Shown piece by piece: positions 16,007-51,228 of a stretch of 64,000 nt of DNA. The position numbers were made by a program, and so were the translations under genes. The notes beneath the pieces were generated by a model. It did not search any database and was not told where the DNA came from. It saw only the letters and a program-made list of their open reading frames with translations. Within the stretch, counting starts at the first letter, position 1; every line of letters begins with the position of its first letter. Source of the DNA: Nageia nagi (lineage: Eukaryota; Plantae; Pinophyta); contig JBITNC010000001.1 in NCBI GenBank assembly GCA_050084985.1, positions 157,170,001 through 157,234,000 on the forward strand. The letters run 5' to 3'.

Positions 16007-19000
16007 TGTGATGATCCAAAATGGACCTCAACTCAAAAACACTCAATTTCAACCAACAAACCCTGATGTTGGGTCTAGGGCATCAAACAAAAGCCAAGAC
16101 ACCCTCAAATATGCAACATTAGGGTTAGGGCATCAATATTATACATTCACAACACCAAGATCCCAACATCTAACTATAACATGCAATATTCAATCAACAA
16201 TACATCATAATGCCAACGCATGATAAGTACAAGCATAAACAACAATAATGATCCAACGCAAGCACAAGATGAGTCAACGCAACAAAAGCATGCCATTCAA
16301 TTGCCCTTGGCAGTGTACAAATGATATGAAGCAGTGCAATACAATACCAAGCCCTAGGGGGCAGTCGTTGGGCTCTCTGGAGCCACCTACGGCACAACAA
16401 TGAATATCCTCGATCACTAGAACAACAACGGAACCATGGGACAATAATGCTCCCTCAGAACCCGAATCCTCTCCACTGAAGGAGTCCTCTGATTTTGGTA
16501 TAACCAACTGAATGGTAGAAGTCGTACCTCGGAATGCCACTGGATGGGTAAGGCATTGCACCAATACCATAGATAGATAGGATCCCTCCACTTGAATGCC
16601 TTCTAGATGTTGCGTCTAGGAATGTTGCTCACCACCGCTAAGTCTTGAAGTCTTATGGACGGTATAAGAGAATACTAATCAAGCATGTTCAGTAATGAGG
16701 CTCCAATGTCTATTTATACATTAGCTCTGTCAAGATCTCACCTAGGAGTCATCACCTAGCCCATCTTATCCAACGTTGGCCTCCTGGGGACCCGAAATAC
16801 CCAACATAGGTGTCTAAATGTTAAACATGCCAACGTGGGGTCCAGGGGTGCATTAAGTGCCAACGAGTGAGCTAAGGGTTGCCATGCATGCCCACATGGG
16901 TGAGAGAGGGCAAATGTGGGGTCTAGGAGTCATGCTGGCCAACGTGGGGGTATGGGAGCCTCTCCAAGCCTAGCACAAGCATGCAAGTGGTTGTCCAATA
17001 CCTCAATACAAAAATACACCTTCGCATTCCCACAATCATTATCGGGATCTCCAAACATGACAAATACTCCTAATCTAATATTAGGAGGGAGACATCCCAC
17101 TTGGGGCTCACAATGGGGTCCATTGACCCATTAAGTCTCCTATCCTAAGTTACAATCATAAAGAGCAATACATAAGGAAAGTATATTACAAGTAGATCCT
17201 TTCGGACCCTACAACTAATGACTTGTGGACAAAGGGGACGTCACAAAGCCTCCCCTCTCAAGATTGCTTGCCCTTAAGCAATACAATGCTGGATGTGCAA
17301 GTATATCAACTCCTTCCCACGTTGAGTCCTCATCTGGCAAGTCCTTCCATTTAATCAGATACTCTTGAATCTGTCTGGATCTCAACTTCTTGAACCTGGT
17401 CTCAAGCACTCTTTTCGGAATTAGAATCAATCGCCCCTCATCATCAAGTGGAGGTAGGGCAATGGATGAGACGTCCTGCTGTCCCATGGCCTTCTTCACG
17501 AGTGAGACATGGAAGGTATTATGGATCTTACTCTCCTGGGGCAACTCCAACTCGTAAGCAATATCTCCCACCCTGCACAGGACCTTGTATAGGCCAAAAA
17601 ACCTAGGATGTAGCTTCTCTTCTTCACACTTCTTGAGTGATGATTATCGACATGGCTGTAATCACACGTACACCATGTCTCCTACTTCGAAGCTCCTCTC
17701 CATTTTGTTCTAATCATAGAACTTTTGCTGATTCTGAGCCATCTACAAGTTCTCTTTCAGCACTCTCATGATGTCCTGATACTCTTGCAAGAAATCGTTA
17801 GCCTTGAGTGCTCTTCCTTCATCAATAATCAAGTCTATAAAGTTAGGAGGATCATAACCATACAAAGCTCAAAAAGGAGACATCTTAATGGACATGTGAT
17901 AAGTAGAATTATAACAATACTCCCCAACGTGGAGCCACTTGACCCATGACTGTTGTTGTCCCATCACAGAATGCCTTAGATATCCCTCCACCCATTTGTT
18001 GACGATTTATGTCTTTCCATTTGTCTGTGGGTGGTAACTAGTGCTACGAGTGAGATCCATCCCACTCAATCGGAACAATTCCTACCAAACCAAACTCATA
18101 AATTTGTTGTCCCGATCACTCACAATCCTCCTAGGCAACCCATGCAACCTAAAGATCTCTTTGAAGAACAAGTCAGCTATCATTGCAGCCGTGTAAGTAA
18201 CAGTAATGGCAAAGAAATGGGCAAACGTGATGAGTATATCCACTACCACGAAGATGTTATCTTTGCCTTGAGCCTTAGGAAGGCCAGTGATGAAGTCCAT
18301 GGAGATATCCTCCCACTTTCGTTGAGGAATAGGCAATGGTTAGAGTAGCCCTCCAAGCTTCACATGCTCCTCCTTGTTCTCCTGACATTTGTACACTCCT
18401 AGACATGCTTTAGAACATCTTGCTTCAGCCCTTTCCAAGTGAACCTTTTTCTAACAACTTGATAGGTCTTTGTGATGCCCGGATGTCCTACTAGAGTGGT
18501 ATTGTGAAGTGCATGTCATACCTTCTTCCTAACCACGGATTTCGGGGTTAAGAAGATCTTGTTCCTCTTCAAGATCAATCCCTCCTTGACCACATATCTC
18601 TTGTTCTTCACCGCTCCACTACGGATACCGGAGGCAAACTCATCTTGCGTGTACTCAGCCATAACTATCTTCTAACAATCAGTAGTGATAGAAGAGAGAG
18701 AATAGAAAGAGGGATTCCTAGACAAGGCATATGCCACAGAATTCTTCCCTTTGATATACTGAATCTCAAAATCAAATGACTATAGCTTACTCACACATCG
18801 TTGTTGTTTCTCAATCAAGTATGTCTGGCTGAGGAAGTCCTTCAAGCTGTTGTGATCACTCTGGATGATAAATGGCCCATAAACAAAATACTATTTGAAC
18901 CTCGCTAATGCATGCATAATGGCCAACATCTCTTTGTCATAGACACTGAAATTCTACTGTACGCTAAACAGCTTCTGGCTCTCAAAACCAATCGGCTGCC

Positions 19001-21930
19001 CATTCTGCATCAATACTGCCCCAATGCCCATCTTTGAGGCATAACACTCCACAGTGATGGAGATTGAGAAATCTAGTATAGCCAAACAGGGACAGGTGCA
19101 CATGACTCTCTTGAGCCTCTCAAAGGCTTCTTGTGTCTCATCACTCCAAACGAATGCATCCTTCTTGGTTAGCTAGGTGAGAGAAACCACGAATGAATCT
19201 CCAATAGTTGTTACACAACCCTAAGAACGCTCTCAACTACGTGAGGGATGTGGGAGCTGCCATTCTGGATGGCTACAATCTTCCATTGATCAAACCTAAT
19301 TCCCTCACGACTGATAATGTGTCCGGGATACAGGATATCAATCATGCCAAACTCACACTTGGACTATTTGGCATAAAACTTCTGCTTCTAGAGTATCCTC
19401 AAAACGTGGTCTAGGTGGCAGAGGTATTCCTCCCATTTTCTGTTGTAGACCAAAATGTCATCAAAGAAGACCAATAAAAACTTCCACAACTGCTCCTTGA
19501 AAACCTAGTTCATGGCTAACTGAAATGTGGCTGGCACATTGGTCAATCCAAACTACATCACCAAGAATTTGAAATGACAATAGTGGCATTGAAAAGTTGT
19601 CTTATGGGCATCCTCCTCTTTCATCCTAATTTGATGATATCCGAATCTCAAATCAATTTTAGAAAAGTACTTGGCCCAATGCAACTCATCAATGAGGTCG
19701 TCCACCCTAGGAATTGGATACCTGTTCTTGATGGTTTTCTTTTTGAGCAATATGTAGTCTATGCACATCCTCATCGTCCGTATGCACATCCTCATCGTCC
19801 CATCCTTCTTGACCAACACCACTAAAGAAGCAAATGGACTAGAGCTGGGCCGAATGAATCCCATATCTAGTAACTCCGTGATAGTTTTCTCTATCTCATC
19901 CTCGTACACTTTTGGATGCCTTTAAGGAGTGACCATAACCAGCTTAGCTCCCGATTCCAACTCCACTATGTGCTCAAACCCTCTAGATGGCGGCAAGCCC
20001 TTAGGTATGTCACCAAAAACGTTCGGATACAGATCCAGGATGCATTGGATCTCAGGTGATTGCTCCTTGGCCTCCCCAGTGTGCCACATGGGACCTCCCT
20101 TGGCCATGGTGAAGATGCAACCCCATTCTACATCTCTTTTCCGAACTATGGCGTTCATCTTCCTGTCCGATATCACCTAAGTGACGGCCTCTAATCTGCC
20201 ACTAGTAGCATTGGATCAGAGCGTCAACTTCCTTTTTGCTTCCTTCTTCTGATCCAAGGATGTGTCCTCTCTAACTCCCTCAAATCCAAACGTTGGTGTT
20301 TAGACTGGCTCTACCCCTCCAACATTGGTTTTCTACCATGCTACCACTCCCTATCCCAACAGGTCCTTATACAACTAAAAGGTGACGTCTCTCTAGAACT
20401 CTTTGCTAGTTCCTCAGTAGATCTAAAGCAAGATCTCAATTTTTGGTGGTGTCTTATGCGGAGTCACAGATCTGGGCTCCCATGTTTGCCCCTTCTTCTT
20501 GCTCATCTTCTCCACGTGTTGCTCTCCTAAGAACCATACAAGCCTCTCCCTTTCCTCCGAAGGGACTTTATCGTCTTTGAGCCTCTAAAGATGTTGGCGG
20601 AAGACTACCTGGCCGTATTCAAACTTCCTCACTCTAGATGTAGATCTGGCTTCCATCCCCTTAGGTGGCAAGATTTTCAGCTTTGATACCACTTGTGATG
20701 ATCCAAAATGGACCTCAACTCAAAAACACTCAATTTCAACCAACAAACCCTGATGTCAGGTCTAAGGCATCAAACACAAGCCAAGACACCCTCAAATATG
20801 CAACATTAGGGTTAGGGCATCAATATCATACATTCACAACACCAAGATCCCAACATCTAACTATAACATGCAATATTCAATCAACAATACATCATAATGC
20901 CAACGCATGATAAGTACAAGCATAAACAACAATAATGATCCAACGCAAGCACAAGATGAGTCAATGCAACAAAAGCATGACATTCAATTGCCCTTGGTAG
21001 TATACAAATGAGATGAAGTAGTGCAATACAATACCAAGCCCTAGGTGGCAGTCGTTGGCCTCTCTGGAGCCACCTACGGCACAACAATGAATATCCTCGA
21101 TCACTAGAACAACAACGGAACCATGGGGCAGTAATGCTCCTCAGAACCCGAATCCTCTCCACTGAAGGAGTCCTTTGATTTTGGATAACCAACTGAATGG
21201 TAGAAGTCGTACCTCGGAATGCCACTTGATGGGTAAGGCATTGTGCCAATACCGTAGATAGACAGGATCCCTCAACCTGAATGCCTTCTAGATGTTGCGT
21301 CTAGGAATGTTGCTCACCACCACTAAGTCTAGAAGTCTTGTGGACAGTATAAGAGAATACTAATCAAGCATGTTCAGTAATGAGGCTCCAGTGTCTATTT
21401 ATACATTAGCTCTGTCATGGTCTCACCTAGGAGTCATCACCTAGCTCATCTTATCCAACGTTGGCCTCCTAGGGAGCCGGAATACCCAACATGGGTGTCT
21501 AAATGTTAAACATGCCAACGTGGGGTCCAGGGGTGCACTAAGTGCCAACGAGTGAGCTAAGGGTTGCCATGCATGCCCACATGGGTGAGAGAGGGCAAAT
21601 GTGGGGTCTAGGAGTCATGCTGGCCAACGTGGGGGTATGGGAGCCTCTCCAAGCCTAGCACAAGCATGCAAGTGGTTGTCCAATACCTCAATACAAAAAT
21701 ACACCTTCGCATTCCCACAATCATTATCGGGATCTCCAAACATGACAAATACTCCTAATCTAATATTAGGAGGGAGACATCCCACTTGGGGCTCACAATG
21801 GGGTCCATGGACCCATTAAGTCTCCTATCCTAAGTTATAATCATAAAGAGCAATACATAAGGAAAGTATATTACAAATAGATCCTTTCGAACCCCACAAC
21901 TAATGACTTGTGGACAAGAGGGACATCACA
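16007..21930 (-). mobile_element. Ty3/Gypsy chromovirus, internally deleted (most of gag/protease missing) and pseudogenised
   Basis: LTRs 16007-17245 and 20694-21930. Perfect TSD ATCTG. PBS ~20680-20691, PPT 17246-17259. RT (PSSSPFAS...YFSKIDLR, 19553-19909), RNase H, integrase ([10 protein letters not shown]...IVSDRD, 18082-18336), chromodomain (EYLIKWKDLPDEDSTWE). Confidence 0.96.
19760..19800. repeat. 21-bp in-frame tandem duplication in the chromovirus RT
   Basis: TATGCACATCCTCATCGTCC(G) x2, giving TMRMCIRTMRMCID. Confidence 0.9.
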
Positions 21931-30958: not shown

Positions 30959-33334
30959 TGTAACGTTCCCTTTTGAGCACAATTGATTTATTTTGGAACC
31001 TAAAGGTTCCTTTCCTTGTAAATAATTTTTATTATTTATTTTTATGCATTTTAGTTGCTAGGGATAGAAATTGTAATGGTCCATTGTACCCCATTGTGAG
31101 CCACAAGAGGGACGTTTTGCTCCCAAGCATAGGTTAGCATATTTTAATGATATTCTATGCACTTGGAGATCCCAAGAATGATTGTGGGAATCCCAAAGGC
31201 CTTGTATGGACATGAAAATTAGATCTAGGCACATGTATGACTCCTAGAAAATGAACGCATGGCATGAGAGGACTTCAAGGACCCCAACGTTGGGCTTGGG
31301 GGACATTGTAGCATAGTCGGAACTCAACACCACACCTTGGGGAGACTATGAACCCCACGCAAGAGCATTTATGGCATATTTTGGGCATTTGAGGGCCTCT
31401 AGGAGGCTAACATTGGATTAGGGAGGCATTGATGACTTTGAGATGAGATCTAGATCCATATTTGACCTATATAAGGTGTTGGAGCATCATTGCATAGATA
31501 TGTTAGATTGGATTATCTCTCTTTTTGAAAAGTTACTAAAGCCTTAGCGCAACGTCAAGCAATCTTGCCCTAGGTATAGCATCTAGGAGGGTTAGCAAGC
31601 TGAGGGATCTTGCTAATCTACATCTAAGGTGTAGCATCTTAGTCCAGTTGATGGTATTACAAGGACGCACTTCTACCTTTAGTGGTTTCCAGGAGTGGGA
31701 GTTTTGTAGCAAAGCATCCACGCTTGAGGGAGTATGGCTGTCCCAACCATTATTTCAGCATTGCAGATTGAAAATTGAGTCCCAATAACAACATTGTCCA
31801 TCATTGATCACATTTTGTAACATCCCTTCTTGTACCATACAAAATAATGTAATAACCAATAGGGAACATTTTAATAATATCCCTTGGGTATTTATTTTGT
31901 AGTTTGTTTTATAGTTATTTTGTATTAACTTGGGACAAGAATTAATTGGTCCGTCGACCCCATTGTGAACCCCTGGCAAGACGTATCCCTCCAAAGTGTA
32001 GATTAGGAAATAATAATGTACTTGGAGATCCCGAACTTCATTGTGGGCATCCCAAGGTCTCATGTTTATTAATTAGCCAGGATAATGGATTGTATGCTTG
32101 CGCCAGCTATGGGGAGCTTCCTAGACCCCACATTGGCAAACCCAAACTCCTAGGCCCCCATGCATGACTCCCAAACCCACATGGCCATGCATGGCACGCT
32201 TAGAACCTGCATTGGCATTTATGGCACCCAGGAATCCCACGTTGGCATGCCTGACACCTAGGCACCCACTTTGGGCATCTCGGGCCCTCTGGAGGCTAAC
32301 GTTGGGGCCTTAGAGGCTAGTGATGATTCTGAGGTGGAATCCAGGTCCTGGTGAGAGTATAAAGAGACATGGAGGTTCATTTGCCCGATAGCTTGATTAC
32401 TATTACTTTACTCTTACATATCGTCTGGTGGACAAAGACCTTAGCAGAGCGCTAAGTGAATTCCTTAGGTGAAGCACCTAAGAGGTTTACCAAGGGGAGG
32501 GAACTTGGTAGTTTACAGCAATTGGTGGAGCACCATTGCCCATCTGGTGGATCCGAGGTGGAATCTCTACCACGCGAGTGGTTATCCAAATCTGAAGAGG
32601 GCCCCTTTGGTGGGGAGGAGTCAGATTGTGAGGAGGCACTGTTGTCCCTAGGTTCATCTGCAATTATCAGGAGTCATTCGGCACGATTCAGCTCCCAAGA
32701 GGCTGACGTCAGGCCCTTTGGGCATATTTTGCATTGTACATCATTGATTATCATAATATAAGCCATGGGCTCATTTGGATCTCAACGTTGTGTCTGTGTT
32801 ACCTATTTTGTGCATGCGTTGAGCATTGCTATGTTGTGTTGTGTTGTGTTTGTGACCCATCATTGGCTTGTGGGGTGTGTACATGCTTGTGGAAGCCCAA
32901 CATTGGCAATCTAGGGTTTGATTTGTTAATTGTGGATGCCCTAGTTGATTGGTTTTGAAAGTAATTGTTCACATTTGTTAAGGATCTCATTTGGGATATT
33001 ACTCATCTACATGTGTGCTTTCCCTAGTTGGCTCCTTGGAGGCCAACGTTGAGCCCTTTGGGCAGATTTGAGGCCTATGTTTGCTCTTCATTGATTAATT
33101 CAGCCATAAGCACATTGGATCTCCTCATACTTGTCTCATTTTGACATTTATTTGCATTCATCTTGCCCTATGTAGCATGATGTCATGTTTGTGAGTATGA
33201 ATGCATAAGAATTGGGTACCCTAAGTGTGATGTTGAGGTTGTAGCATGAGCATTGGATTATTACATATTTTATTTGGCATTTATTTGAGATCATTTACTT
33301 AATTTCTACTTTGGAGAATTTTTGGAATATTTCA
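30959..33334 (+). mobile_element. Chromovirus-family solo LTR (~1.18 kb net) with a nested solo LTR
   Basis: Termini TGTAACGTTCC / GGAATATTTCA. Perfect TSD CTTTC. Close reverse-complement similarity to 36952-38121. Confidence 0.88.
31816..33003 (+). mobile_element. Chromovirus-family solo LTR nested in the previous one
   Basis: Termini TGTAACATCCC / GGGATATTACT (terminal A mutated). TSD CATTT/CATCT. Motifs shared with the 16007 and 5509 LTRs in reverse complement. Confidence 0.8.
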
Positions 33335-36951: not shown

Positions 36952-38121
36952 TGTAATATCCCCAAAATAATCTTAAGTGCAAATTAGCCAAATAATTATC
37001 AACTAATATCAAAATACACCCTTAAGCATGCCACGTCTGAACTAGGGCATCAAATACATGCAAAAACAAGCCAGGAATGCCAACGATCCACCTTATAAGC
37101 AAGAATAACACTCAAATGCCCAATGTCATGCACAATGAGACAAGATTGCACCAAACACACAATTATGAGACAATAATGAGATCCAAGTATGCCACGACTT
37201 CAATTAGCAAGATAGTGATGAGTATAATATCGAACTAGCCCAAGCGGGCTCAACGTTGGCCTCCAAGGAGCCAACTAGGGCATACGAAATGCAAATATGA
37301 TCACTGCTGGAACAAATGGATGGGACAGCTACACTCCCTCAAGATCTAAATCCGCTCCACTAAAGGAGCCCTCTCCAAATCCTAGAAACCAACTAAATGG
37401 TAGGACTGCAACCTCGGAATACCACCAATTGGACTAAGATGTTGCACCTTAGCCGTAGATTAGCAAGATCCCTCAACCTGCTAACCCTCCTAGATGCTGC
37501 ACCTAGGGTAAGATTGCTTGATGCTACGCCAAGGCTTGTGTCCTCTGGACAAAAGAAACGATAATATAAAAATCAACATATCCATGCAATGATGCTCCAA
37601 CGCCTAATATAGCTTAAGTCTGGATCTAGATTATCACCTCGAAATCATCAATGCCTCCCTAATCCAACATTAGCCTCCTAGAGGCCCTCTAATGCCTCAA
37701 ACATGTCATAAATGCTCATGCGTGGGGTTCAAAGCCTCCCAAGGTGTGACATGGGTCTTCAAGGGCGATGGGATGTCTCCAAGTCCAATGTTGGGGTCCT
37801 AGAAGTCCCCCCATGTCATGCATTGGGTTTCTAGGAGTCATACATGTGCCTAGATCCTATTTTCGTGTCCATACAAGGCCTTGGGATTCCCAAAATCAAT
37901 TCTTGGGATCTCCAAGTACATAAAATAACATTAAAATACGTTTGCCTATGCTTGGGAGGAAGACATCCCTCTTGGGGCTCATAGTGGGATCACAGTGGGA
38001 TCTAATGAACCATTATTATTTCTATCCAAAGTCCTAACGACAAATATATAAATAAATATTTACAAAGAGGGAATCTTGAGGATTCCACAATTAATTATCT
38101 TTTACAAGAGAGAATGTTACA
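36952..38121 (-). mobile_element. Chromovirus-family solo LTR (1170 bp)
   Basis: Termini TGTAATATCCC / GAGAATGTTACA. Perfect TSD TTGTT. No adjacent PBS or PPT. Confidence 0.92.
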
Positions 38122-39171: not shown

Positions 39172-42100
39172 CTGCAAAGTATTACATTTTGCGAGTCAAA
39201 TAACATTAATACAAAATCAAGCACTCTTAGCTCAATGAAGAGATTTAAAGTCACCAGACTCACCAAATGGTAGGAAACCAGCTAGCATTTTTCAAACTGA
39301 GAAATTAATCAAATTGAGCCCAGACATTGTCATTGAAAAAAATTGTAAACAAAAGTTAAAAATAATGTATAAAGTACATGAAATTATATGAAAAACCTTT
39401 GTTATAAAACTCTACAAACCTTGGTGACTTATTTTAGAGTTACTCCATAACAAAAATATGCATGATAAAGCCTTGGATACTTCTTCACTTGACACTCTTA
39501 CTTCATTTTAACTCGAACATCTACACGAATAAAAAGGACCCCTTCAAATAATTTGGAAATCTTCAAATCATAGAGGTACCTAGAATTAAAAGATTCTATT
39601 GTCCAAACTTAAGTGTGACACAACAGTTCCCTAAATCAAATCTAACATGTAGCCCCAATTCAATTTTCTATACAGAAAATGTTCTATTTTTCTTTAATCT
39701 TAAGATTGAATGAGGATATAAATGGGAAAATGAAAAAGAATACATAAGTTTACATTCATAACACTAACAAAACACCTCTTACACGGAGGAGGGCACAAAA
39801 TACTTATCTACAAGAATAACGACAGGTAATGGGAAACACCTTCATATCATATAAAATATACCTTGTCTACATATACTTTGTCTACATATGTTATTGACCT
39901 TATCCGCTTATTAATCAATAAGAAGGAATGAAAAAAAAAAAAAAAAGAATTTAGTAGTGTTCAATGAGGTCTCATGATACAGAAGGCGTAGTAATGGATG
40001 AGTCTGTTGGATTAACAACATTATGCACACATACATGACCAAGCACAATCAAAACTCAACTAAGCCCAGCTTAATACACATTACTACTTAGGTTAATTAG
40101 TAAATTATATATTTACATTTATATAAAACAAAATCTGTAGAAATTATCCTCTGCACTCACATGGGACTACTATAAAATGTGATATTGACATAGATATTGT
40201 AACTATAGACTTTTATAACTGTTTATTTTTCAATTCAAGCTGTTTATAGCTCTTCTAACTAGTGTAATAGCATCAAGCATGTCCATAATGACACACTCCA
40301 TTATTGCAACTTACCTTCCTAGTCTGTGCAAATGTGTAAACGTTGAGATTGCAAATCACTACTTGTTAGATTGCCTCAGTTGTGCTTTCTTGCAGTTTAT
40401 GTTTAAGCTGCCTTTTTATACAAAGTTATTGGTTAGTGTTCGAAATTGACCTCGGTTGACTTGCAAATATGACTTCATCAACAATTTTTGGCCAGATCTG
40501 ATGAAACTGGTCCCCCTGATGAAATGCAAGCACGTTTCAGGTGAAACGCAGACCCTCTAATGAAACACAAGCGTGTTTCAATTTCCACGTGAGTAATTCT
40601 GGAATGTATGAACCCTGGGCATATGAGCTAAAACATTGGCGTGTTCCTGGAGTGTTCTGATGAAATGCTGGTGCGTTTTATCAGTTTTGTCTTTTTTTTC
40701 TTAGGCGTTACAATTTGGTTGGTTTTGTAACTGTAGGTCTTGGACTCCTCATTTAGATCGATTCTTCTTCATCCGGATTGTACATAGACTGTAGTTTCAT
40801 TCTAGTTTGGGTTGATTTCCAACTTGGTTGTACTGGTGTGTAGCATTTTGATGTTGAAGACTGAATATTGATAACTCCATTATTCTCCATTGCTATCTCT
40901 TGTTCATTGTGTATTTGCTTCATTGTGGATGATGTTTGTTTATAAGTTTCGGCTATAAATTTCATTGTGGTATCAGAGCTTGGTTTGATTGAAGGATTTG
41001 AATAAATTTGTGATCTTTGTAGCAATTTATCAAATTCTTATTTGATATTGTTGTCTTGTTGCTTGAGCTATAATGGCCAACAACACAAACTCCCTTCCTA
41101 TTTCAGAGTTTCATGGAGCAGACTATAAATATTGGAGAATCAAAATGAAGATTTTGTTGATGGGCAAAGGAATGTGGGATATTGTTGAGGATGGTTACAT
41201 TGAACCAAGTGATTGGAGCACTCTTCAAGTTGCTAATAGGACAGCAAGGAAGGAGACACAAAAGAGGAATTGTCTAGCTCTCTATCATCTTGAATCTGCA
41301 CTTGAGAAGAGCATTTTCCCAAGGATTGTTGGTTGTACAACAGCTGCACAAGCATGGAATGCTTTGAAAGATGGATATCAAGGAAGTGACCAGGTCAAAC
41401 AAGTTAAATTGCAAACTTTTAGAAGAGAGTTTAAGAATTTGAAGATGCAAGAAAGTGAAGGTGTTGGAGATTACTGTGTAAGAGTGAAGGTTGTTGTCAA
41501 CAAAATGGCAACTCTTAGAGAAGTGTTGGAAAAGGAAGTTGTGATCAAGAAGAAGTTAAGAACACTTACCCCCAAATGGAACCATGTTGCTATCATTATT
41601 GAAGAAAGCAAAAATTATCCACTCTTGAATTTGATCAATTGATTGGCTTTCTCATGTCTCATGAGAAGAGGTTGAAAGAACCTACTGTTGGAAGTGTTGA
41701 GGAGAAAGCATTTTCTTCCAAAGACACTAAAGCAAGTTCTAGTGGACAAGAAATGCAAATAGCCAAGGGAGAGGTCAGAATTCTTCTCAACGAAGAGGTA
41801 GAGGTGGTTCAGCTGCAAGAGGAAGAGGTAGAGGCAGAATTGATAAGAAGAATATGCAATGTTACCATTGCAATATATATGGGCATTTTGAGATAGAGCG
41901 TAGACTCAAGGTTGCAAATGAAGGGAGGACAGCCAACTATGGTGAAGAGGAGACTGTTGGTGATCAGAGTTTGTTCTTATCATACAATAAGTTTGTTAAG
42001 AATCTTCGAGAGACATGAATACTTGATACGGGATATTCCAATCATGCTATCGGTAAGGGAGAGATGTTTTCCTTAGATCATTCCTACAAATCTAGTGTCA

Positions 42101-43680
42101 AGTTTGGTGATGATAAAACCTTGAAGGTATCAGCCAAAGGAGTGATGGAAGTGAACACAAGAGAAGGGAAGAAGAAGGTTCATGATATCTACTATACTCC
42201 AAATTTGAAACACAATTTGTTGAGTGTAGGCCAGATTAGAGAGAAAAACTACAAGCTAGTTTTTGAAGATAGAAAATGTGTCATTAATTACAAGAACCAT
42301 GGGAACAAAGTTGTTACAACTATTCCTATATCAAGCAATAGGTGGTTTCTTTTGATATTTGGAGGACAAGGTGGCAATCTTGCAAACGTGGTTGTTGAAA
42401 AAAAGAATTGGTTGTAGCTTCTCAGATTTGGGCACATGAATTTTTCAGGTTTGAATTTGCTTACATCTCATGAGATGGTGTATGGCTTGCCAAAGGTGGA
42501 GGATCAAAAGACTGTTTGTGAAGGGTGTCTCTTGGGAAAGCAAACTAGACAGAATTTTCCTAAAGGGAAAGCATGGAGGGCTTCGTATCCTCTTCAATCG
42601 ATCCATTCTGATATTTGTGGGCCTATGCAAACTCAAAGTTTGGGTAAGAACTCCTATTTTCTTACCTTTATTTATGATTGTTCAAGGATGTGTTGGGTGT
42701 TTTTTTCTAAAACACAAGGAGGAAGCATTTAATTGTTTCAAGGATTTTAAAAATCATGTTGAAAATCAGAGTGGAAGAAGCATAAAGTATTTGAGACTGA
42801 CCGTGGTGGAGAGTTTTGCTCCAATGAGTTTCTTGCATTTTGCAAAGAAAGTGGCATTAAAAGGCAAATCATTGTTGCCTATACTCCACAACAAAATGGA
42901 GCAGCTGAAAGAAAAAATAGGACTGTTGTTGAAATGGCAAGGAGAATGTTGCAAACCAAGAAATTGAGCAATATTTACTGGGCTGATCAGTCCGGACAGC
43001 AATGTATATCTTGAATAGGAATCTTACTAGTAGCTTGGAAAAGATGACTCCCTATGAAGATTGGTATGAAAAGAAGCCCAATGTTAACCATTTCAAAGTT
43101 TTTGGTTACTTGGCTTATGCTCATGTGGCTAATGAACATAGGAGGAAGCTTGATCCTAAGAGATGAAGCATGTATTTTCATAGGCCATGGTGAGAACACT
43201 AAGACCTATAGGCTGTACAATCCAAAAACTCACAAAGTTGTGGTGTCTAGAGACGTGATTTTTGATGAAGGGGGAGTGTATGATCATCAAAAACAGTATG
43301 TAGATGATGGTGGCCATGGTGGAAGCTCTTCAAATGTACAGTCTATTGACGCCTCAACACACACCCCCTCCTTCTTTTTTTTGCAAAAGGATAAGGGGAA
43401 CCTCAGCTTCAAACAACATTTTTTTTAGCAAGAATGGAAGAAAGTTGTTCAAAATAGCCCAAAGTGCAACTTTAAAATCAAATGAGAAGCTTACTTAAGA
43501 AAAACAAGCATTTTCCAGGAAATTCATGTATAGGAACAAGTATGAAATCCGAAAATGGTGAAGTTCAAGGTTGGTCGTATGTCGAAGGAAAGATATATTT
43601 ACATGGAATAGCACAGCCACCTTCTCAAGCAAGTTTCAGCATTCAAAAGGTTGTTAAGTCCTCAAATTCTCCATTTTAAG

Positions 43681-44958
43681 GGTGTTCGCATGATTTCCAA
43701 CAATTGCAAAGTCATCTTCCTCTAACCATGAAACCACCTCTCTTAAGCAACCAGGAAGCATAAAATCGGGTTAAGTAATGGAAATTCTCTTCCAAGGGCA
43801 TTCGCACAATTCAAGTTAGTTGCAAAGTCATCTTTTTGTGGCCTCCCAACCACCATTACTAGCACGTTGCATTTGCCTTGATCACATTCGGCCTTCATTT
43901 GAACCAAATGGACGAGGGCACTTGGCAAGGAAGTCAGTATATAAAGGAAGGCCGCCTAGTTCACTTATAACATTCATATTGCAGCTTCAAAGGTGTTTGC
44001 ATGGTTCTTGAAAGTAACATTTTCATCTTCCTAAAACTATGCGACCACCATCCTTTCAAGTTCCAAGTTCAAGAATCGACTAAATGTTGGGAAAAAGGCT
44101 CATTAAGGCGTTCGCATGGTTTCAAACAGTAGCATTTCCATCCTTTTCCAAGCATGCGACACCCTTTTAGACATTAAACATGCATTGAATCGGCTTGTCT
44201 CGAAGTCATTCGGCCTCCACTCGAACCACTATAATGTGGACACCTGTCAAGGTGAAAACTATAAAAGCAAGTCTTGTTCCTTACTTCCAAGTCAACTTTT
44301 GCCTCTGAAGTGGTTGCACAATCCTAAATAGTCACCTTTGCATCTTGTTGAAGGCATGCGACCACCCCCTTTCTACATTCAAACACCATTCATAGTGATC
44401 ACATGGTTTCACAGAGTTGCGTTTGCATCCCTTTCAAGACAAGCAACCACCATCATTCCTGCATCTTGGGGCTAAGTCTAGCATGTTGATCATCCATTCT
44501 TAGTGGTCGCATGGTTCCATTTAGTTACCTTTGCATCTTTCAAGGAAGGCCCAACCACCTTTTTGCATCTCCAAAACAACTAAGTATGTTCGCATGGTTT
44601 TGAATAGTTAAAGTTTCATCTTCTGGAAAGCATGTGACCACCTTTGTCATGCATTATAAACGACACTTGTCGAAGCACTTGCCTTTCCTCCTTGAAATAT
44701 TGCCATCTGGCAATCCTGAGCAACTATAAAAGAGAAAGAAGGGTGACTTAGTCCAAGTTAGTGTTTCATAGTGTTGGTCGCACGATTTCAAGAAGTTACA
44801 CTCCCATCATTCCAAAACCGTGCAACCACCTCCTTATTACATTATTGTTTGCATTTCATGATCCATTGCATTGTTTGTTTTGCATCAACTCATTCCACAA
44901 CATGGTCGCATGGTTCCTAGGAGATAGACATCCATCATTGTGAATGCATGCGACCACC
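43681..44958. repeat. Array of ten 58-bp palindromic modules (12-bp arm, 34-bp interior, 12-bp arm)
   Basis: Starts at 43681, 43797, 43992, 44107, 44309, 44394, 44502, 44585, 44773 and 44901. Approximate consensus GGTG(G/T)TCGCATG-N9-AGT-N8-CATC-N10-CATGCGACCACC. Confidence 0.92.
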
Positions 44959-45266
44959 CCTTTTTGCATTTAAATCGTTTTAGTAAGCGTCCATTTCTGT
45001 CCTAAAAGTGGGCCCATGCACTTCCTTACCGTTTTTGTGGTTACCTCATACATTTAAAATTTGAATTCATTTGCATTCAAAAGAGAAACCACCTGTCAAC
45101 CACCTTGTCATCATTCATGCATTAAAATTAGGTTATAGACAATGTTGCATGTAGAAAGAAGTTGGTCACCTTACTTTCATATACAAGCATACAAGTTTGT
45201 CAGGCATTGCACCCCCTTCTCTGTCAGAGTCAGTCGCTACTAATTCATTTTGCTTGCAAGTTAAAG

Positions 45267-47210
45267 ATGGTAAAGATCAATTCTAAGCTAGGCAAATCCA
45301 GAGATAGAATTTGCGAAAAAGAATCCTGAAGATCCCTTGAAGCAAGCCAAATTCAAGAATAACTTTACCACTATCCGGGATACCAACTGGTCTCACACCG
45401 ACCCAATCCAAACATTACAAGCTATTGGGGAATTAGACAAATTCCAAATCTCTAAAGAAATAGTGTGTACTTCTGGATTGGCGACTGCCACATTAATTCC
45501 TTTTGCCGTTCCTTTTCCATACTTCTGCTACAAAGTGGGTAGGCATGCCAACTTCAAGAATCGAGCCCTCTATGACACTAATGGAAATCAAATCTTAGAT
45601 TTCTCTCCTTCGGGGATTGAGGAAGCCTTTAAGTGGAGCAATGAAGGGGTCATTTATACGGAGAGAGATTCTTTAGAATATTATGAGAAGTCTCCACAAG
45701 CTGCAAGTCTTATCAGAGAAACAAGTTGTTAAATGCAAAGAGGCAACACTTCTACCCCACGGTATCTATGATCATTAGCATGTTGTCTAGAATCACTGGC
45801 AAAGAAGATGACTTTAAGTTCCGAAAAGAGTTCACTGGATTCATTGCCATGATTGGAAACTGGTAGAGAATAAGGTGGAGTAGAGTAATAAGTGACTCCC
45901 TCTTGTTCCAACTAGCTCACATTGGTTCTTCAAGAAAGTTTTGTATGAATTCCTACCTAGTTTTCCATCTCCTCCATGCCAAAAATAGGAAGTCAACCCA
46001 TACAGAAGTTGAGATCTTGAATAATCCAGAGAAGCTTGTATGGAGAGCTTACCCCAAGTGGTGGCTAGAGTCAAGATGGAACTACTATGCCATGAGGAAC
46101 GATGGATGGGAGTTCCAAATTTATAAAGAAATCAAGGGGAGGCAAATGGTGAAAAGAATCTCCGATTCAGCCGTTGAGGCCATTCGGGGGCATGCTGACT
46201 ACTTTCTAAAAGACCTTGCACATACTTAAATCCGGGTCTATGGCTCTAAAGTTAGCCCTTACGTCTTGCCCTAGTATGCCAGCAATCACTTCATCCTCAT
46301 GGAATTTTGCAAGCAACTATTGTTTTTGTATGAAAATGTATGGAAAAAGAAAAATGCTACAACTAATATCCCTATTTCAATCAAGGATTACACTTGCTCA
46401 ACCTAGCAAAAGGCTAAGGAGATGGGCAAAGAATTATCTTACTACCACTTTAGTGAGGAGGAGGCAACCTCCCACTATGACCTTGAAGGGAGAATCCAGT
46501 GCTTTTACAAACGAGCATTTAGGAATCCTATGATCTATGGGCATCGACCTCTTGGGAACAAGGAAAGATACAGAAACAAGAGGGAGGAGAAGCAGATCCA
46601 AGAGGTTCATCAAATCCTGATAGCTGAAGGACGAATTGATAGGAGAATCCAGAACCTGAATGATCCTCGGACCGTCTCCACTGACAGATCGACCTCCTTT
46701 TCAAGAATAAGAAGACACCAAGGAAGGACAGAAGAGCACGACACTCTGGGTGTGGCCAGGCCTGGAATCCACACCGTAGTTAGGGAGATTGCCAAAGACG
46801 TTGCCATCATAAAGGAAACAAGTTATCCAAATTTCCCTCTCCAACAGCTTGAAGATGTTATCCCAAAGGATGTTCCTATGGTGCCTATCATGCCTATTCA
46901 GGCTGAGAATCCTCTAGTCCTCCCTGACCTATTAATACCTGCAAAGGAACATGCACCAGACATGTTTCCAGAGCCTATTGAGGCCGAAATTCAAGAAAAT
47001 GCTCCCACCACAAACCAACCCGAGGATCCTAACTCCTCAAGCTCGTCTTCTGATTTTGAAACATCCTTTGAATCATCTAGTTCACATGAATCAAGTTTGA
47101 GAGAAGAAGACATTGAAAAAGAGACCGAAGAAGAGCATAAAGATGGTGAAGATTCTCACACTAACTCACATGAAACTCAAATCATAGATATCGAAGGAGA
47201 TTCTGACATT
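45267..47210 (+). pseudogene. Frameshifted ~640-codon non-Gag/Pol ORF inside the giant LTR-like unit
   Basis: Consecutive same-strand ORF pieces 45337-45732, 45903-46229 and 46422 onward, bridged by alternate-frame IISMLSRITGKEDD...IRWSRVISDSL and IRVYGSKVSPYVLP. Ends in a Pro-, Ser- and Glu-rich tail. Start and end approximate. Confidence 0.7.
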
Positions 47211-50200
47211 TGGCGATGTTGTTTGGCCGCAATTTTGTTTTTGACAGTAGTTTACACATTTTACGATATAGTAATAGGGTTGCGTGGTTGTTTTAGGGCA
47301 ACATCTCATTTAATGAGGTTGTCAGTAGCATGCTATAAGTACATTTCACTGGGTCATTATAAGAAGGAGGAGATGGTTATGCAGTTAGAGATACACATAT
47401 AGTTAAATGCATAGAGATTGTGTAATTGCTTTTGCGAGCTGAATGTCAATTTTCTAAGGAGCATTTTTTGAAGCACAACTTTTGAAGTTTAAGTTTCCAT
47501 TTGCATGTATGTATGATCCATCTTTTTGGGGAAACTTTGTTATCAATGAAAGTCTGATTGTTTATTTCATGGGATTGTAATTATGTTAATGACATGACAT
47601 GCATGTTGTTGCATTGTTTATACATTTATGAGCATTTCCTTTGAAAGTTCGGCACTTTAGGGAAAGATTGTTGAATATCTTTCTTAAATGGATGAATGAT
47701 CGTTCCTGCAATCTGCATACAGTTGTATTATTTTGGAACTACTCTGCTTTTATGATATTTGATTGGCTTTATCTGCCGGAAATGGGAAACTAATCTATAC
47801 ACCCATTCACATTCACCTTACCATACCAATTATCGCCTTGTGCTCTTGCTTGGGAAAGATCCGAACCCAGTCGCTTCCTTCCTTGCTTGATGATCCCAGT
47901 AGAAATTTCCTAATAAATCCAAAAGCAAAGCCCCAAACCCTATGCAACAGTAAACAATCATTACTTATTTCACAATCAACTGCTGAGTTCACTTCGTTCT
48001 TGCATGTCTCTACACCTTGAATACCATTGTCTTTTGCTTTGAGTACTATCATGAGAATTGCAGAAAATTGTGAAGGAATACCAATAGGTCCGTAATTACT
48101 TTGTGAGTTAACTACCCCGAGCACATTCTTACCTGAGCCACTTCCTCGACAAAAGAGCACCTTTAATAGGTAGGGAAAATCCGTTTAAGGTCACAAGGAA
48201 CCCTTTAGAGTTCCAAAGCCGTATAAACCTTGGGGTTAAAGTCCTTTCAAGTGGAGGTAAGTAATGCTACCTCACTCTTCCTGGTGTTGTTTCTCACAAG
48301 GGGAAACAAACTCACGTCAACACAATCCAATGTGCAGCCCAACCTTCAAATTGTGCCACCAAGTCCACCAATCAGCTCTTCAAACAGTCCAACTTCAAGC
48401 ACTACTAGTCCCTCTTCAAGTGACAATTCACCAAACAATATTTTGTTTGATGTGATGAAGACCAAGAGAGGTAAAAAGACACTACAAATTCATCCACCTA
48501 CTCAAGTTTTGGTCAATAATTTCCATAGAAAACTCACAAGAAGTCGAGCTCAAGAAATGGACCAAGTTGTTCAAAGGCCAAGAAGATGCACATGTATGGT
48601 GATAAAGATGAAGGTGAGCCAAAAGGTGATGTTGTGAATTATGCCTTGATGACTGTTTCTGATTATGAAACTTTTTGTTATGAAGAATCTTGTACTAACC
48701 GTGTTTGGATGCAACAATGACGGAAGCATTGAGAGACACAAGGCTAGGCTTGTGGCTAAAGGATTCACACAAAAGTATGGAATTGATTATGAAGAGAATT
48801 ATGCACCGGTAGCAAGGCAAGAAACAGTGAGGATGGTTCTTCCTTTTGCTGCCCAAAAACGTTGGAATGTACATCACATGGATGTAAAAAGTGCATTTTT
48901 GAATGGCTACTTGGATGAGGAGGTTTATATACAACAACCTCAAATTTTTGAGATCAAAGGAGAGAAGATCATGTGTATAAACTAAAGAACGCTTTGTATG
49001 GCCTTAAACAAGCACCAAGAGCTTGGTACACAAGAATTGACAGATGACGTCTTGTTTGTATGTTGATGATTTGATTTATATGGTTAGTAGGTCGAAGTTG
49101 AACGACAATTTTAAGGTTGCCATGATGAGTGAGTTTGAAATGAAGGATTTAGAATTGATGTAATATTTTCTTGGCATGGAGGAGCACCAAAGTAAAGACC
49201 AAATCTTCATTTGTCAAACCAAGTATGCAAAAGATATGTTGAAGAAGTATGGAATGGACAATTACAAACCAGTCCCTACTCCCATTACTCATGGTGAGTT
49301 TTTGTGCAAAGATGATGGGGCTACAAAAATGAATGTAACTAAGTATAGGAGCATTGTTGGGAGCCTAATGTTTCTCACAAACACCAAACGCGATATTGCA
49401 CATGATGTCTCTTTGGTTTCTAGATACATGAGTAAGTCTTTTATCTTGCATTTGAGAGCTACAAAACGAATTATTAGATATGTAAGTGGTACCATTGATT
49501 TTGGCATTCATTATTCTCATATTAAGAAGATGAAATTGGTTGGTTTTAGTGACTCGGATTGGGGTAGCAACTTGGATGATAGAAAGTCTACCTTAGGTAA
49601 CTGTTTTTCACTTGGTTCAGGGCTTATCACTTCGAACTTCAAGAAGCAAGGATCAATAGCACTCTCCCAGAGGCTGAACACATTGCACTCACTTCAGCAG
49701 CCTTGTAGCTTTGAAAAGCTTTGGAGGAGATTGGTGAGAAACAAGATGGACCTGCTTTACTTTTTTATGACAACATGAATGCCATTCAGTTGGCACAAAA
49801 CCCAATCCACCATAGCCGATCTAAACACTTTGATTTGAAGTATCATTTCATTCGTGAAATGGTGGAGAAGAAACATATTGAGCTAAGGTATTGTAGCACT
49901 CATGATCAATTGGTGGATATTTTCACAAAAGGGGTTGCTAAAGCTCAGTTTTTGAAGCTGAGAAACTCACTTGTAAGCCCTCTCAGCATCAAGGGGAAGA
50001 ATGTTGGAAATTGACCTCAGTTAACTTGTAAATTTGACCTCATCAACAATTTATGGCCAAATCTAATGAAATGTGGTCCCCCTAATGAAACGTAGGCGCA
50101 CTCAAGTGAAACACAGATGCTCTGATGAAACGCAAGCTTATTTCAATTTCTACATAAGCAATTCCAGAATGTATGAGCCCTGGTCATATGAGCTAAAACA

Positions 50201-51228
50201 TTGGCGTAAACCTGGGGTGTTTTGATGGAATGTTGGCGTGTTTTATCATTTTTGTCCTTTTTGTCTTAGGCGTTACAATTTTGCTTGGTTTTGTAACTCT
50301 AGGTCTTAGACTTCTCAATTCATATTCTTGATCAATTCTTCTTCATCCGGATTATACATAGACTATAGTTTCATTCTAGTTTGGGTTGATTTCCAACTTG
50401 GTTGTACTGGTGTGTGGCATTTTGATATTGAAGACTGAATATTGAGAACTCCATTATTCTCCACTGCTATATCTCGTTTATTGTGTATTTGCTTCATTGT
50501 GGATGATGTTTGTTTATAAGTTTTGGCTATAAACTTCAGTTAGGATCATCTTCAGCTTGAAACATCCCAAACTTAATACGTGAAACAACTACGTTTTATT
50601 CTCACACTGGGTACGCTTGCAAAATGTTGGTCTTATGGATCCTTTATAATCAAATACAGCTCACTTATTTCCTCCATCAGTTTCATTGTGTGAGCCTAAC
50701 ATTTTGTATCTCTGCATATTGAACTTGTTGGAGCATATTACAAAGAAAATTGATAAGGTGATTTGCCAAAAAAACATTTTTCGCTCACAAACTAGTACTC
50801 CTCATCAACTGACAAGTAAAAAAATATTAAAAAGAATACATAAGTTGTCTACAACCCTACATATCGCAAGTTCTAACAGTTGTGCCAAAAACTGCAAGAC
50901 TTGTATCTCATATGTTTCATGTTAATGACAATTAAATCAGGCATAAAACCAGTTGAAACATGCTATGTGAAGGATTTAACTCCTGCTCAGATTACCCCTT
51001 TGGCTACTTATGATACCCATATTTTGGTCGGAAAGGGTCCTCATGCATCTGATCAGGCTTAGGCTGGACATAAGAAATCTTATCCTCCGCAAAATATTCA
51101 TCAGTCTACATAAGTGATGAGTGAATTATGGGCCATTGGGTAGAGATGGAAGGGTGAAACTAGAAACATCAGTAGCGTTATCAACCAAAATGCATTCCTA
51201 GCTTTGGGACCTAATCCAAGTTGTCTTC

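Follow-up and report, generated by a model that had tools for sequence, protein, structure and literature searches.

The window, the 64-kb stretch of DNA analysed here, holds a Ty1/copia LTR retrotransposon into which a second mobile element has inserted, and this second element carries an array of 58-bp modules with inverted ends upstream of a gene of its own. The host retrotransposon is bounded by LTRs in direct repeat (40537-40964 and 50102-50538) and gives domain matches to Retrotran_gag_2, Pol_BBD, SH3_retrovirus and RVT_2. The nested element lies between the integrase and the reverse transcriptase of its host and is flanked by an 8-bp direct repeat, which occurs in matching codon phase on both sides; excising the insert restores the copia pol reading frame. 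The principal features are:

40537..50538, + strand: host Ty1/copia LTR retrotransposon
43354..43361, no strand: left copy of the target-site duplication (TSD), TCAACACA; right copy at 48317-48324
43362..48316, + strand: nested mobile element of 4955 bp, with the array in its 5' part and its own gene
45267..47402, + strand: the element's own gene, ATG at 45267, ~700 aa when intact; a pseudogene in this copy

Between 43362 and 48316 there are no LTRs or terminal inverted repeats (TIRs), domain searches find no transposase encoded by the element, and no other copy turned up when the element was compared by blastn with the remainder of the window. Carrier identities of the hAT, CACTA or Helitron type were rejected, since TIRs, CACTA ends and 5'-TC...CTRR-3' termini are all absent. 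Among the hallmarks of target-primed reverse transcription, the 8-bp TSD is present and a clear poly(A) or simple-repeat tail is not; no partner LINE was found.

The module array

A re-reading of the sequence bears out what an earlier, sequence-only reading of this DNA had described: ten 58-bp modules (starts 43681-44901) with a 34-bp interior in all ten, CATC at interior positions 21-24 and A at interior position 10 in every module, AGT at positions 10-12 in 8 of 10, and linkers of 58, 137, 57, 144, 27, 50, 25, 130 and 70 bp. MAFFT aligns the ten modules without gaps and in one register. The modules, with a degenerate eleventh and the remnants that follow, are:

43570..43621, + strand: module 0, the degenerate eleventh; left arm GTTGGTCGTATG, right end CACAGCCACC, right half 6 bp shorter
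43681..43738, + strand: module 1, 48.1 bits
43797..43854, + strand: module 2, 40.4 bits; poor palindrome (4/12)
43992..44049, + strand: module 3, 51.9 bits
44107..44164, + strand: module 4, placed by alignment and sequence-model score
44309..44366, + strand: module 5, placed by alignment and sequence-model score
44394..44451, + strand: module 6, missing from at least one related copy (joint 44366>44501)
44502..44559, + strand: module 7, poor palindrome (6/12)
44585..44642, + strand: module 8, placed by alignment and sequence-model score
44773..44830, + strand: module 9, CACG/CGTG arms
44901..44958, + strand: module 10, placed by alignment and sequence-model score
45087..45176, + strand: module remnants between array and gene; AACCACC twice, CATCATTCATGCA, and a lone left-arm-like AGTTGGTCACC followed by CTTACTT

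With up to two mismatches allowed, the 12-mer arm has 20 matches in the window against 1.64 expected, so the array is not a product of chance, and 16 of these 20 fall in 43570-44958. Remnants included, the modules are confined to 43570-45176, with none elsewhere in the window. Scored with a sequence model of the module, the ten give 40-52 bits on the + strand and never exceed 21 bits on the - strand; all ten are thus co-oriented, and together with the decayed module they point towards the element's own gene. In density and orientation the arrangement resembles VANC-type target arrays, with 10-11 modules in 1.4 kb, all on the + strand and in the non-coding DNA of one transposable element (TE). 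Module 0 stays in register as far as the CAT(G) block and then lacks 6 bp in its right half, so that module length is not strictly constant; position T43578 within it reads C in other family copies, which gives CGCATG. MITE or foldback insertions were rejected as an identity for the modules, which have a single orientation and no TSD-like duplications flanking any of the ten.

Linker length runs from 25 to 144 bp overall and spans 25-70 bp among the short ones. The three long linkers share homology, but their alignment needs many gaps and they are ~30% different outside the TATA and ACTTA motifs that they share:

43855..43991, + strand: long linker and promoter-like cassette 1; TATATAAA at 43938, ACTTA 24 bp on, module 54 bp after the TATA
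44165..44308, + strand: long linker and promoter-like cassette 2; TATAAAAG at 44260, CTTACTT at 44280, module 49 bp after the TATA
44643..44772, + strand: long linker and promoter-like cassette 3; TATAAAAG at 44725, GACTTA at 44745, module 48 bp after the TATA

The array can therefore be described as three homologous cassettes, each running from a TATA through an ACTTA-type motif (20-24 bp after the TATA) to two to four modules, the first of which begins 48-54 bp after the TATA. Cassette length, taken as the spacing of the first module after each cassette, is 311-470 bp.

The element's own gene

The gene starts 309 bp downstream of the last module. In this copy the frame is shifted twice, by 32-nt deletions near 45304 and 45719, and interrupted by four in-frame stops; other family copies have 32 extra letters at both deletion sites, and the N-terminal homologue P0003 begins MAKINSKLG. 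Representative relatives number 41 at E <=0.001, 18 at E <=1e-10 and 2 at E <=1e-30, and more fragments tile the protein. For the close relatives P0003 and P0056, the longest Logan contig is 5290 bp in both cases.

Searches for a known identity of the protein returned little. Across 23 family members at E <=5, no Pfam family was matched consistently and neither DUF1985 nor PMD was found; the family profile has no match by sequence in the PDB, the ESM Atlas gave no usable match for the gene family, and the viral and prokaryotic genome collections gave none. AlphaFold models of P0042 and P0009, built from family alignments, are of low confidence (pLDDT 53.8 and 64.5), and Foldseek against the PDB with VIA-align placed nothing above noise for these low-confidence models, the best hit (Z 4.7) being a C-terminal helix pair. 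A single-protein metagenome scan recovered one independent locus (L001, the same as L002), whose protein is about 40% identical. A sequence-model scan found none of the 58-bp modules there; L001 has instead a different repeated motif, TGTTGCACC, three times immediately upstream of the gene start.

Other copies of the element

In four public runs, labelled as three organisms, contigs span the entire 43362-48316 interval at 80-99% likeness, and the family is abundant in all four, with many contigs 90-99% alike. The modules within the array are only 50-72% identical to one another; their divergence is therefore older than the recent amplification and has been carried by active elements. Joints in the contigs of other copies (43675>43992, which is cassette-sized, 44366>44501 and 44610>44947) record the gain or loss of whole modules or whole cassettes, so that, as in LINE-type monomers, tandem units with promoter features vary in number among copies. 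The best-supported small indels of the array, among those listed, lie in linkers (43791, 44743) and none lies inside a module. Taken together, the contig sequences indicate that module length tends to be conserved across family copies. In all four runs the copies diverge after about 48275-48277, where the conserved 3' core may end.

Constraint on the modules

The matrix of pairwise identities between modules is uniform and star-like, for which reason odd and even sub-families arising from cassette duplication were rejected. The interior had been called mostly divergent, a description that does not hold up: mean pairwise identity is 56% there, and the arms reach 68% and 74%. No variation is seen in thirteen columns, among them T6, C9, A10, T14, A22, C33-A34-T35-C36, A53, C54, C57 and C58; a uniform-rate star model predicts ~4.9 such columns (P about 0.001). 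Columns conserved in at least 9 of the same ten modules show no excess (21 vs 18.4, P = 0.28). The claim that the modules have no indels is true of the ten, which run gapless over 580 bp, but fails for the eleventh with its 6-bp deletion; moreover, discovery by gapless matching is biased against copies with indels. Constancy of length was judged from the fixed lengths and the gapless MAFFT alignment, a gap-permissive aligner being uninformative for the modules. The proposal of selection on geometry is thus modestly supported, the gapless modules and the 13 invariant columns speaking for it and the deletion in module 0 and the lack of a wider column excess against it. The distances from module to module give no robust sign of helical phasing (best uncorrected Rayleigh p 0.03).

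The arms are inverted, as had been noted, but complementarity within a module reaches only 4-10 of 12 positions. Likewise, the CACG/CGTG of module 9 is present, whereas its reading as a change that preserves pairing is unlikely, since the arms show a pattern of CpG decay instead. CACA in modules 2 and 5 and TG/CA variants at the two arm CpGs fit decay from ...TCGCACG / CGTGCGA..., which would make the state of module 9 ancestral and not compensatory; on these sequence grounds, its arms have probably retained the ancestral form. CpG observed/expected is 0.52 in the modules and 0.47 in the linkers.

Roles of the modules

On balance, we favour the view that the array is an upstream control region, amplified in tandem and belonging to a mobile element that is high-copy and non-autonomous and has one gene of its own. 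Each 58-bp module would be a putative composite site in double-stranded DNA for a sequence-specific protein or complex, with putative contacts at T-GCA (6-10), TT (14-15), AGT (22-24), CATC (33-36) and ACCACC (53-58); contacts at such fixed blocks would account for a constant internal register beside linkers that are free to vary. The repeated TATA cassettes may serve as alternative promoters, in which case a copy could keep a working promoter/enhancer set despite module loss by unequal recombination or truncation. The candidate binder would be a factor supplied by the host or the protein that the element itself encodes. Points against this account are the modest evidence of constraint, the bias of gapless matching, the ATGs within the modules and the lack of modules at L001. 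A challenge to any functional account is that the array might be a neutral relic, an old tandem duplication in the non-coding leader of a TE that has since decayed, its fixed length and blocks arising from ascertainment and uneven mutation. The low and uniform identities without sub-structure, arm variation that is mostly of the CpG-transition type, near-invariant columns that are not in excess, the evidence from module 0 that indels do occur and the similar CpG ratios of modules and linkers all fit such a history. We nevertheless regard it as unlikely: it does not account for the excess of invariant columns, for 580 bp of modules free of indels while every linker class changes length, or for TATA and ACTTA motifs kept at matching positions in three otherwise dissimilar cassettes, and the diverged modules have passed through a recent large amplification and have not decayed in place. 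If the array is a control region, a more specific version of this reading, which we hold only tentatively and think rather improbable, is that the modules are the putative cognate sites of the protein encoded downstream. By binding the array, that protein would keep the family active, perhaps by counteracting DNA methylation or silencing by Polycomb, and the whole would be a gymnosperm element in which a so far undescribed protein family is paired with some ten palindrome-ended 58-bp operator modules of fixed register, acting in anti-silencing or self-activation. In its favour, array and gene travel in one TSD-flanked unit; the gene family is conserved, is carried by TEs and shows neither an enzymatic nor any other known domain; dense one-way motifs in non-coding DNA with gain and loss of repeats are features reported for VANC21 targets (PMC5735166); VANC-DUF1985-like PMD-C proteins likewise associate with short motifs, including a palindromic one (bioRxiv 10.1101/2024.09.27.615353); and the distant relative L001 has its own repeated motif upstream of the start. 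Against it stand the lack of a consistent match of the family to DUF1985, PMD or any other Pfam entry, a profile that matches nothing in the PDB by sequence, two poor AlphaFold models with no fold match above noise, and a composite module far larger than the 9-bp VANC21 motif.

Two further readings explain the inverted arms differently. The sequence-only reading had offered a multipart protein-binding site or a structured RNA hairpin, and of these the former is the better backed, by the mobile-element context, the position upstream of a gene and the three TATA cassettes. As an RNA, a transcribed module would fold into a 12-16-bp stem with a 26-34-nt loop and act as a small-RNA precursor or leader element. 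Several single modules do fold better than shuffled sequences (z = -4.2 for module 3 on the + strand, z = -5.1 and z = -3.7 for modules 9 and 10 on the - strand), and TATA boxes lie upstream of modules; good folding is, however, a trivial outcome of an inverted DNA repeat. The covariation that would have marked a conserved stem is missing: the 12 arm pairs are 70.8% paired against 70.7% when the 3' arms are shuffled, 291 of 500 shuffles among the ten modules pair at least as well, the covariation score is 0.070 vs 0.079, and CpG state accounts for the one double change. The two arms of a module thus vary separately about a DNA consensus, which, with the polarity and common orientation of the modules, leaves the hairpin unsupported. 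Modules 1, 2 and 7 scarcely pair, Rfam gives no match at the gathering threshold or at E <=1, and none of the listed runs that hold the stretch is recorded as RNA. T runs within several interiors speak against Pol III products, and Pol III small-RNA genes, which the TATA boxes had brought into consideration, were rejected on this ground and for want of a USE-like element upstream, with four or more T following only 3 of the 10 modules. We accordingly consider a structured RNA highly improbable. A similarly slim chance attaches to the modules being subterminal sites for a transposase or other mobilising enzyme in the style of En/Spm or Ac. Module 0 lies about 210 bp from the element's left end and the 12-bp motif occurs in both orientations, as TnpA sites do, but the motif is missing from the right end and the 3' part of the element, there are neither terminal inverted repeats nor an encoded transposase, and the array runs 1.6 kb inward and includes the TATA cassettes.

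Comparison with known systems

The control region that we favour has partial counterparts in several mobile elements. In the mouse L1 5' UTR, tandem promoter "monomers" vary in number among copies, and the present array likewise consists of repeated 5'-end units with promoter features and variable number. The element here, however, encodes no reverse transcriptase and has a TSD but no poly(A) tail, and its cassettes (311-470 bp) combine TATA boxes with palindromic modules. Plant LTRs carry enhancer repeats in U3, such as the BII boxes of Tnt1 and the 13-bp MYB sites of Tto1; these resemble the array as short repeated units, here putatively protein-binding, upstream of a TATA box in a plant mobile element, but the array lies outside an LTR, its units are far longer and have palindromic ends, and the arms match no AC/MYB consensus. 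The subterminal repeats of En/Spm (CACTA) elements, bound by TnpA, are like the modules in being built on a 12-bp motif that lies in both orientations in a cluster close to an end of the element. The present element differs in having no such motif at its other end, in lacking CACTA termini and a 3-bp TSD, and in keeping its inverted pairs exactly 34 bp apart.

Similar in layout is VANC21, whose target arrays of the motif YAGTATTAY in Arabidopsis VANDAL21 are oriented, TE-borne and evolve by gain and loss of tandem repeats (Hosaka et al. 2017, PMC5735166). In both systems a dense, oriented motif array occupies non-coding DNA of a TE that also encodes a non-enzymatic protein, and the arrays of both are built up and reshaped as copies gain or lose tandem repeats. 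The differences are that the module here is 58 bp long, with inverted ends and fixed internal blocks, and not a 9-bp motif; that the element is not a MULE and has no transposase or TIRs; and that the protein has no detectable DUF1985/PMD signature. The PMD-C proteins MAIL1/MAIN and MAIL2 have been linked to the promoter motifs M1M and palindromic M2M (bioRxiv 10.1101/2024.09.27.615353). The resemblance is to a promoter-proximal motif, palindromic in one form, connected with a TE-derived family that shields expression from silencing; in that case the motifs are short, single and in host genes, and no PMD homology was detected in the protein here.

Significance and further observations

The giant genomes of gymnosperms are built of transposons, and what keeps them active or silences them is little understood. 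An abundant element without enzymes, in which one conserved, unnamed gene stands behind strictly formatted modules and repeated promoters, is a candidate unit of cis/trans control. To our knowledge, sequence-specific self-recognition by TEs has so far been described mainly for VANC; if the protein binds its own array, this would extend past the MULEs of Arabidopsis, with long, programmable-looking binding sites gained as well. If a host factor binds instead, the modules would mark a promoter architecture that the genome has copied many times, which would be relevant to annotating regulatory DNA spread by transposons.

Summed contig depth is highest over the last 800 bp of the element, as might be expected of a 3' end shared with a partner LINE. 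Several ATGs lie inside the modules and would be upstream start codons in the leader of the gene, if transcription begins at the TATA cassettes.

Architecture of the module array

The ten 58-bp modules at 43681-44958 are real and non-random: a repeat search recovers nine of them as one in-register 58-nt family, and the tenth, at 43797, lies in the same frame. Much of what the sequence-only reading described is borne out, as the MAFFT alignment of the ten modules is gap-free, the interior is 34 bp long in 10/10, CATC (columns 33-36) and A22 never vary, 8/10 modules have AGT and the linker lengths agree with those reported earlier. The 12-mer GGTGGTCGCATG occurs 20 times in the window at ≤2 mismatches (1.64 expected), with 16 of these matches within 43570-44958, and a sequence-only model trained on these ten modules detects no further module elsewhere in the 64 kb. 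Scores under the sequence model are 40-52 bits on the + strand vs ≤21 bits on the - strand, which makes the modules polar, and all ten share one orientation. The 12-bp inverted arms claimed earlier are present, but their complementarity inside a module is only 4-10/12. Alignability extends beyond the arms over the whole module (mean pairwise identity 0.68 for the left arm, 0.74 for the right and 0.56 for the interior between them), and the module alignment shows a weak extension of the palindrome to ~16 bp (GTTT/AAAn).

Features of the array and its host
40537-50538: Ty1/copia host, with direct repeats (LTRs) at 40537-40964 and 50102-50538
43570-43621: module 0, a decayed eleventh module; register kept up to the CAT block, right half 6 bp shorter
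43938, 44260, 44725: TATA boxes, one per long linker
Downstream of the array, to ~45176: arm-like remnants

Homology unites the three long linkers, of 137, 144 and 130 bp; the short linkers (25-70 bp) show no alignment to one another. Because each long linker carries its TATA box, an ACTTA-type motif 20-24 bp downstream and the start of the next module 48-54 bp past the TATA, the array is a higher-order repeat made of promoter-like cassettes, with two to four modules behind each. On a smaller scale, the sub-motif T(C/T)GCAT(G/C) or TTTCATC occurs three times per module (array 43684-44910): at positions 6-12, in direct orientation at positions 30-36, and inverted at positions 47-53. Several linkers contain repeats of TTTGCAT(C) as well, and the 58-bp module may have been assembled from a smaller repeated site.

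The carrier element and its gene

The copia host retains gag, Pol beta-barrel, integrase SH3-like and RVT_2 domains by Pfam. An insert of 4955 bp foreign to copia separates the end of its integrase (~43360) from the Ser/Pro-rich linker ahead of its reverse transcriptase (from ~48325). It is flanked by TCAACACA, an 8-mer starting at 43354 and again at 48317 in identical codon phase, and in silico deletion of the insert with one TCAACACA copy restores the pol frame. The array occupies the first 1.6 kb of this insert, in which no LTRs, terminal inverted repeats or clear poly(A) tail were found. The host is decayed, is split by the insertion and carries more frameshifts near 48600, and its LTRs are roughly 430 bp long and 83-94% identical.

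The gene of the element starts at an ATG at 45267, 309 bp past module 10, and its reading frame can be traced through 45267-47402 across two frameshifts and four stops. Contigs from other copies hold 32 extra letters at 45304 and 45719, the frame-break sites of the window copy; since gaps and frame breaks coincide, this copy is dead via two deletions, both of which shift the frame. The equal 32-nt size of both gaps might be an effect of k=31 contig assembly. For the N-terminal 146 residues, a search of 1.84 billion representative proteins finds 41 relatives (E ≤0.001), of which 18 reach E ≤1e-10 and 2 reach E ≤1e-30; a few long matches are spurious repetitive proteins, and the databases represent only fragments of the family. 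Additional fragments tile a conserved core of ~500 residues with the motifs DTxWxHxDP, IPFxVPFxxLC, GNxIMDFSxxGIExAF, LITLLSRVTGQEND, IRWSxVISD, FYMNSYLVYLLLH, YPKWW and WEYxIYK(D/E)IKG. In sequence pattern, the two segments GNxIMDFSxxGIExAF and LITLLSRVTGQEND...IRWSxVISD may resemble PMD-type proteins. No family member has a consistent Pfam match or a DUF1985 or PMD signal, and the PDB yields no match to the family by sequence or by profile. Two AlphaFold models of family proteins have mean pLDDT of 53.8 and 64.5, and with these low-pLDDT models Foldseek and VIA-align return nothing above noise. The gene family is real, conserved and TE-borne.

Copies in other DNA

Four public runs, whose labels name three organisms, contain parts of the stretch; none of these runs is on record as RNA. 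Short contigs at ≥80% likeness, thousands in number, span the full 4955 bp, and for many the likeness is 90-99%, far closer than that of the modules to one another (50-72%). The divergence of the modules therefore predates the recent amplification, the active elements having carried ten already-different modules. Joints at 43674/5>43992 (three runs), 44366>44501 and 44610>44947 mark copies from which entire modules or a cassette are missing. Among the small indels listed for the array region, the best supported lie within linkers (43791, 44743) or upstream (43650) and none in modules, an indication only that small indels spare the modules.

In all four runs, summed contig depth peaks over the final 800 bp of the element (47512-48316), which could be a 3' module common to a more abundant partner element. 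Copies diverge sharply beyond 48275-48277, right after a small hairpin (GAGGTA...TACCTC).

What the modules may be

With somewhat more belief than doubt, we read the array as the promoter/enhancer region of a mobile element, amplified in tandem and made up of putative composite double-stranded DNA binding modules. The less likely readings differ in how they fare. The structured RNA hairpin raised earlier is highly improbable: some modules do fold better than their shuffles, as expected for any inverted repeat, but modules 1, 2 and 7 barely pair, the arm helix is 70.8% paired vs 70.7% when 3' arms are re-dealt among modules, one pair in the ten modules has a double change, the covariation score is lower than the shuffled mean, and Rfam gives no matches. 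In their behaviour the arms resemble two separately conserved copies of one DNA motif rather than the paired strands of an RNA stem. The CACG/CGTG of module 9 does preserve pairing, yet it is likely the ancestral state rather than a compensatory pair, because CpG variation in the arms is mostly of the transition type; CpG observed/expected is alike in modules and linkers. That the modules are transposition sites we consider just as improbable as the hairpin.

Neutral decay as the source of the pattern is unlikely, though well ahead of those two. A star-tree model, with uniform rates set to reproduce the 62% identity seen, predicts ~4.9 invariant columns, and 13 are observed (P ~0.001); the same model gives no excess of columns conserved in ≥9/10 modules. 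The fixed geometry proposed earlier holds in that module length is constant while all linker classes vary, but module 0 shows that deletions are possible, and start-to-start distances have no robust 10-11-bp phasing.

Comparison with VANC21 and an outside relative

TE-borne arrays of regulatory or binding motifs are known already, and the present case is a variant attached to an undescribed gene family. VANC21, the anti-silencing protein of Arabidopsis VANDAL21, is an accessory protein that binds a short motif found in dense one-orientation arrays within non-coding parts of the transposon that encodes the protein, and these arrays evolve via tandem repeat gain and loss (PMC5735166). The Nageia modules are alike in forming a dense one-orientation array, in lying within non-coding DNA of their own element and in showing tandem repeat gain and loss. 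By this likeness the protein of the element is a candidate reader of the modules, a possible but doubtful role.

One JGI metagenome contig (L001 = L002) encodes a relative ~40% identical to the protein pieces of the window and has no modules. Instead, TGTTGCACC occurs three times, in direct orientation, <200 bp upstream of the ATG of the relative at 7703.

Copies of TGTTGCACC on the outside contig
L001 7414, 7469, 7603 (= L002 528, 583, 717)

This fits upstream motifs that change along with the protein, although one outside locus is insufficient to carry the claim. The core of TGTTGCACC is similar to the GGTG(G/T)TTGCAC variants of the arms in the window. Further upstream of the related gene, a long inverted duplication (5669-5971 / 6871-7254, blocks 76-94% complementary) points to rearrangement at this site or to a nested foldback insertion, and ~3.3 kb upstream an array of CCACGTTGG-containing units (4003-4460) has its units at multiples of 30 bp (spacings 150, 60, 90, then more copies).

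Other repeats in the window

Direct repeats at 16007-16793 / 20694-21478 (94-98% identical, ~4.7 kb apart) and 1218-2064 / 5587-6467 (90-97% identical, ~4.4 kb apart) probably represent the paired LTRs of two further short retroelements. At 31090-31680 / 37396-37988 lies a large inverted repeat whose ~600-bp arms, 5.7-6.5 kb apart, fall into three blocks of 83-88% complementarity; it could be an element with long TIRs or a pair of LTR copies in opposite orientation.
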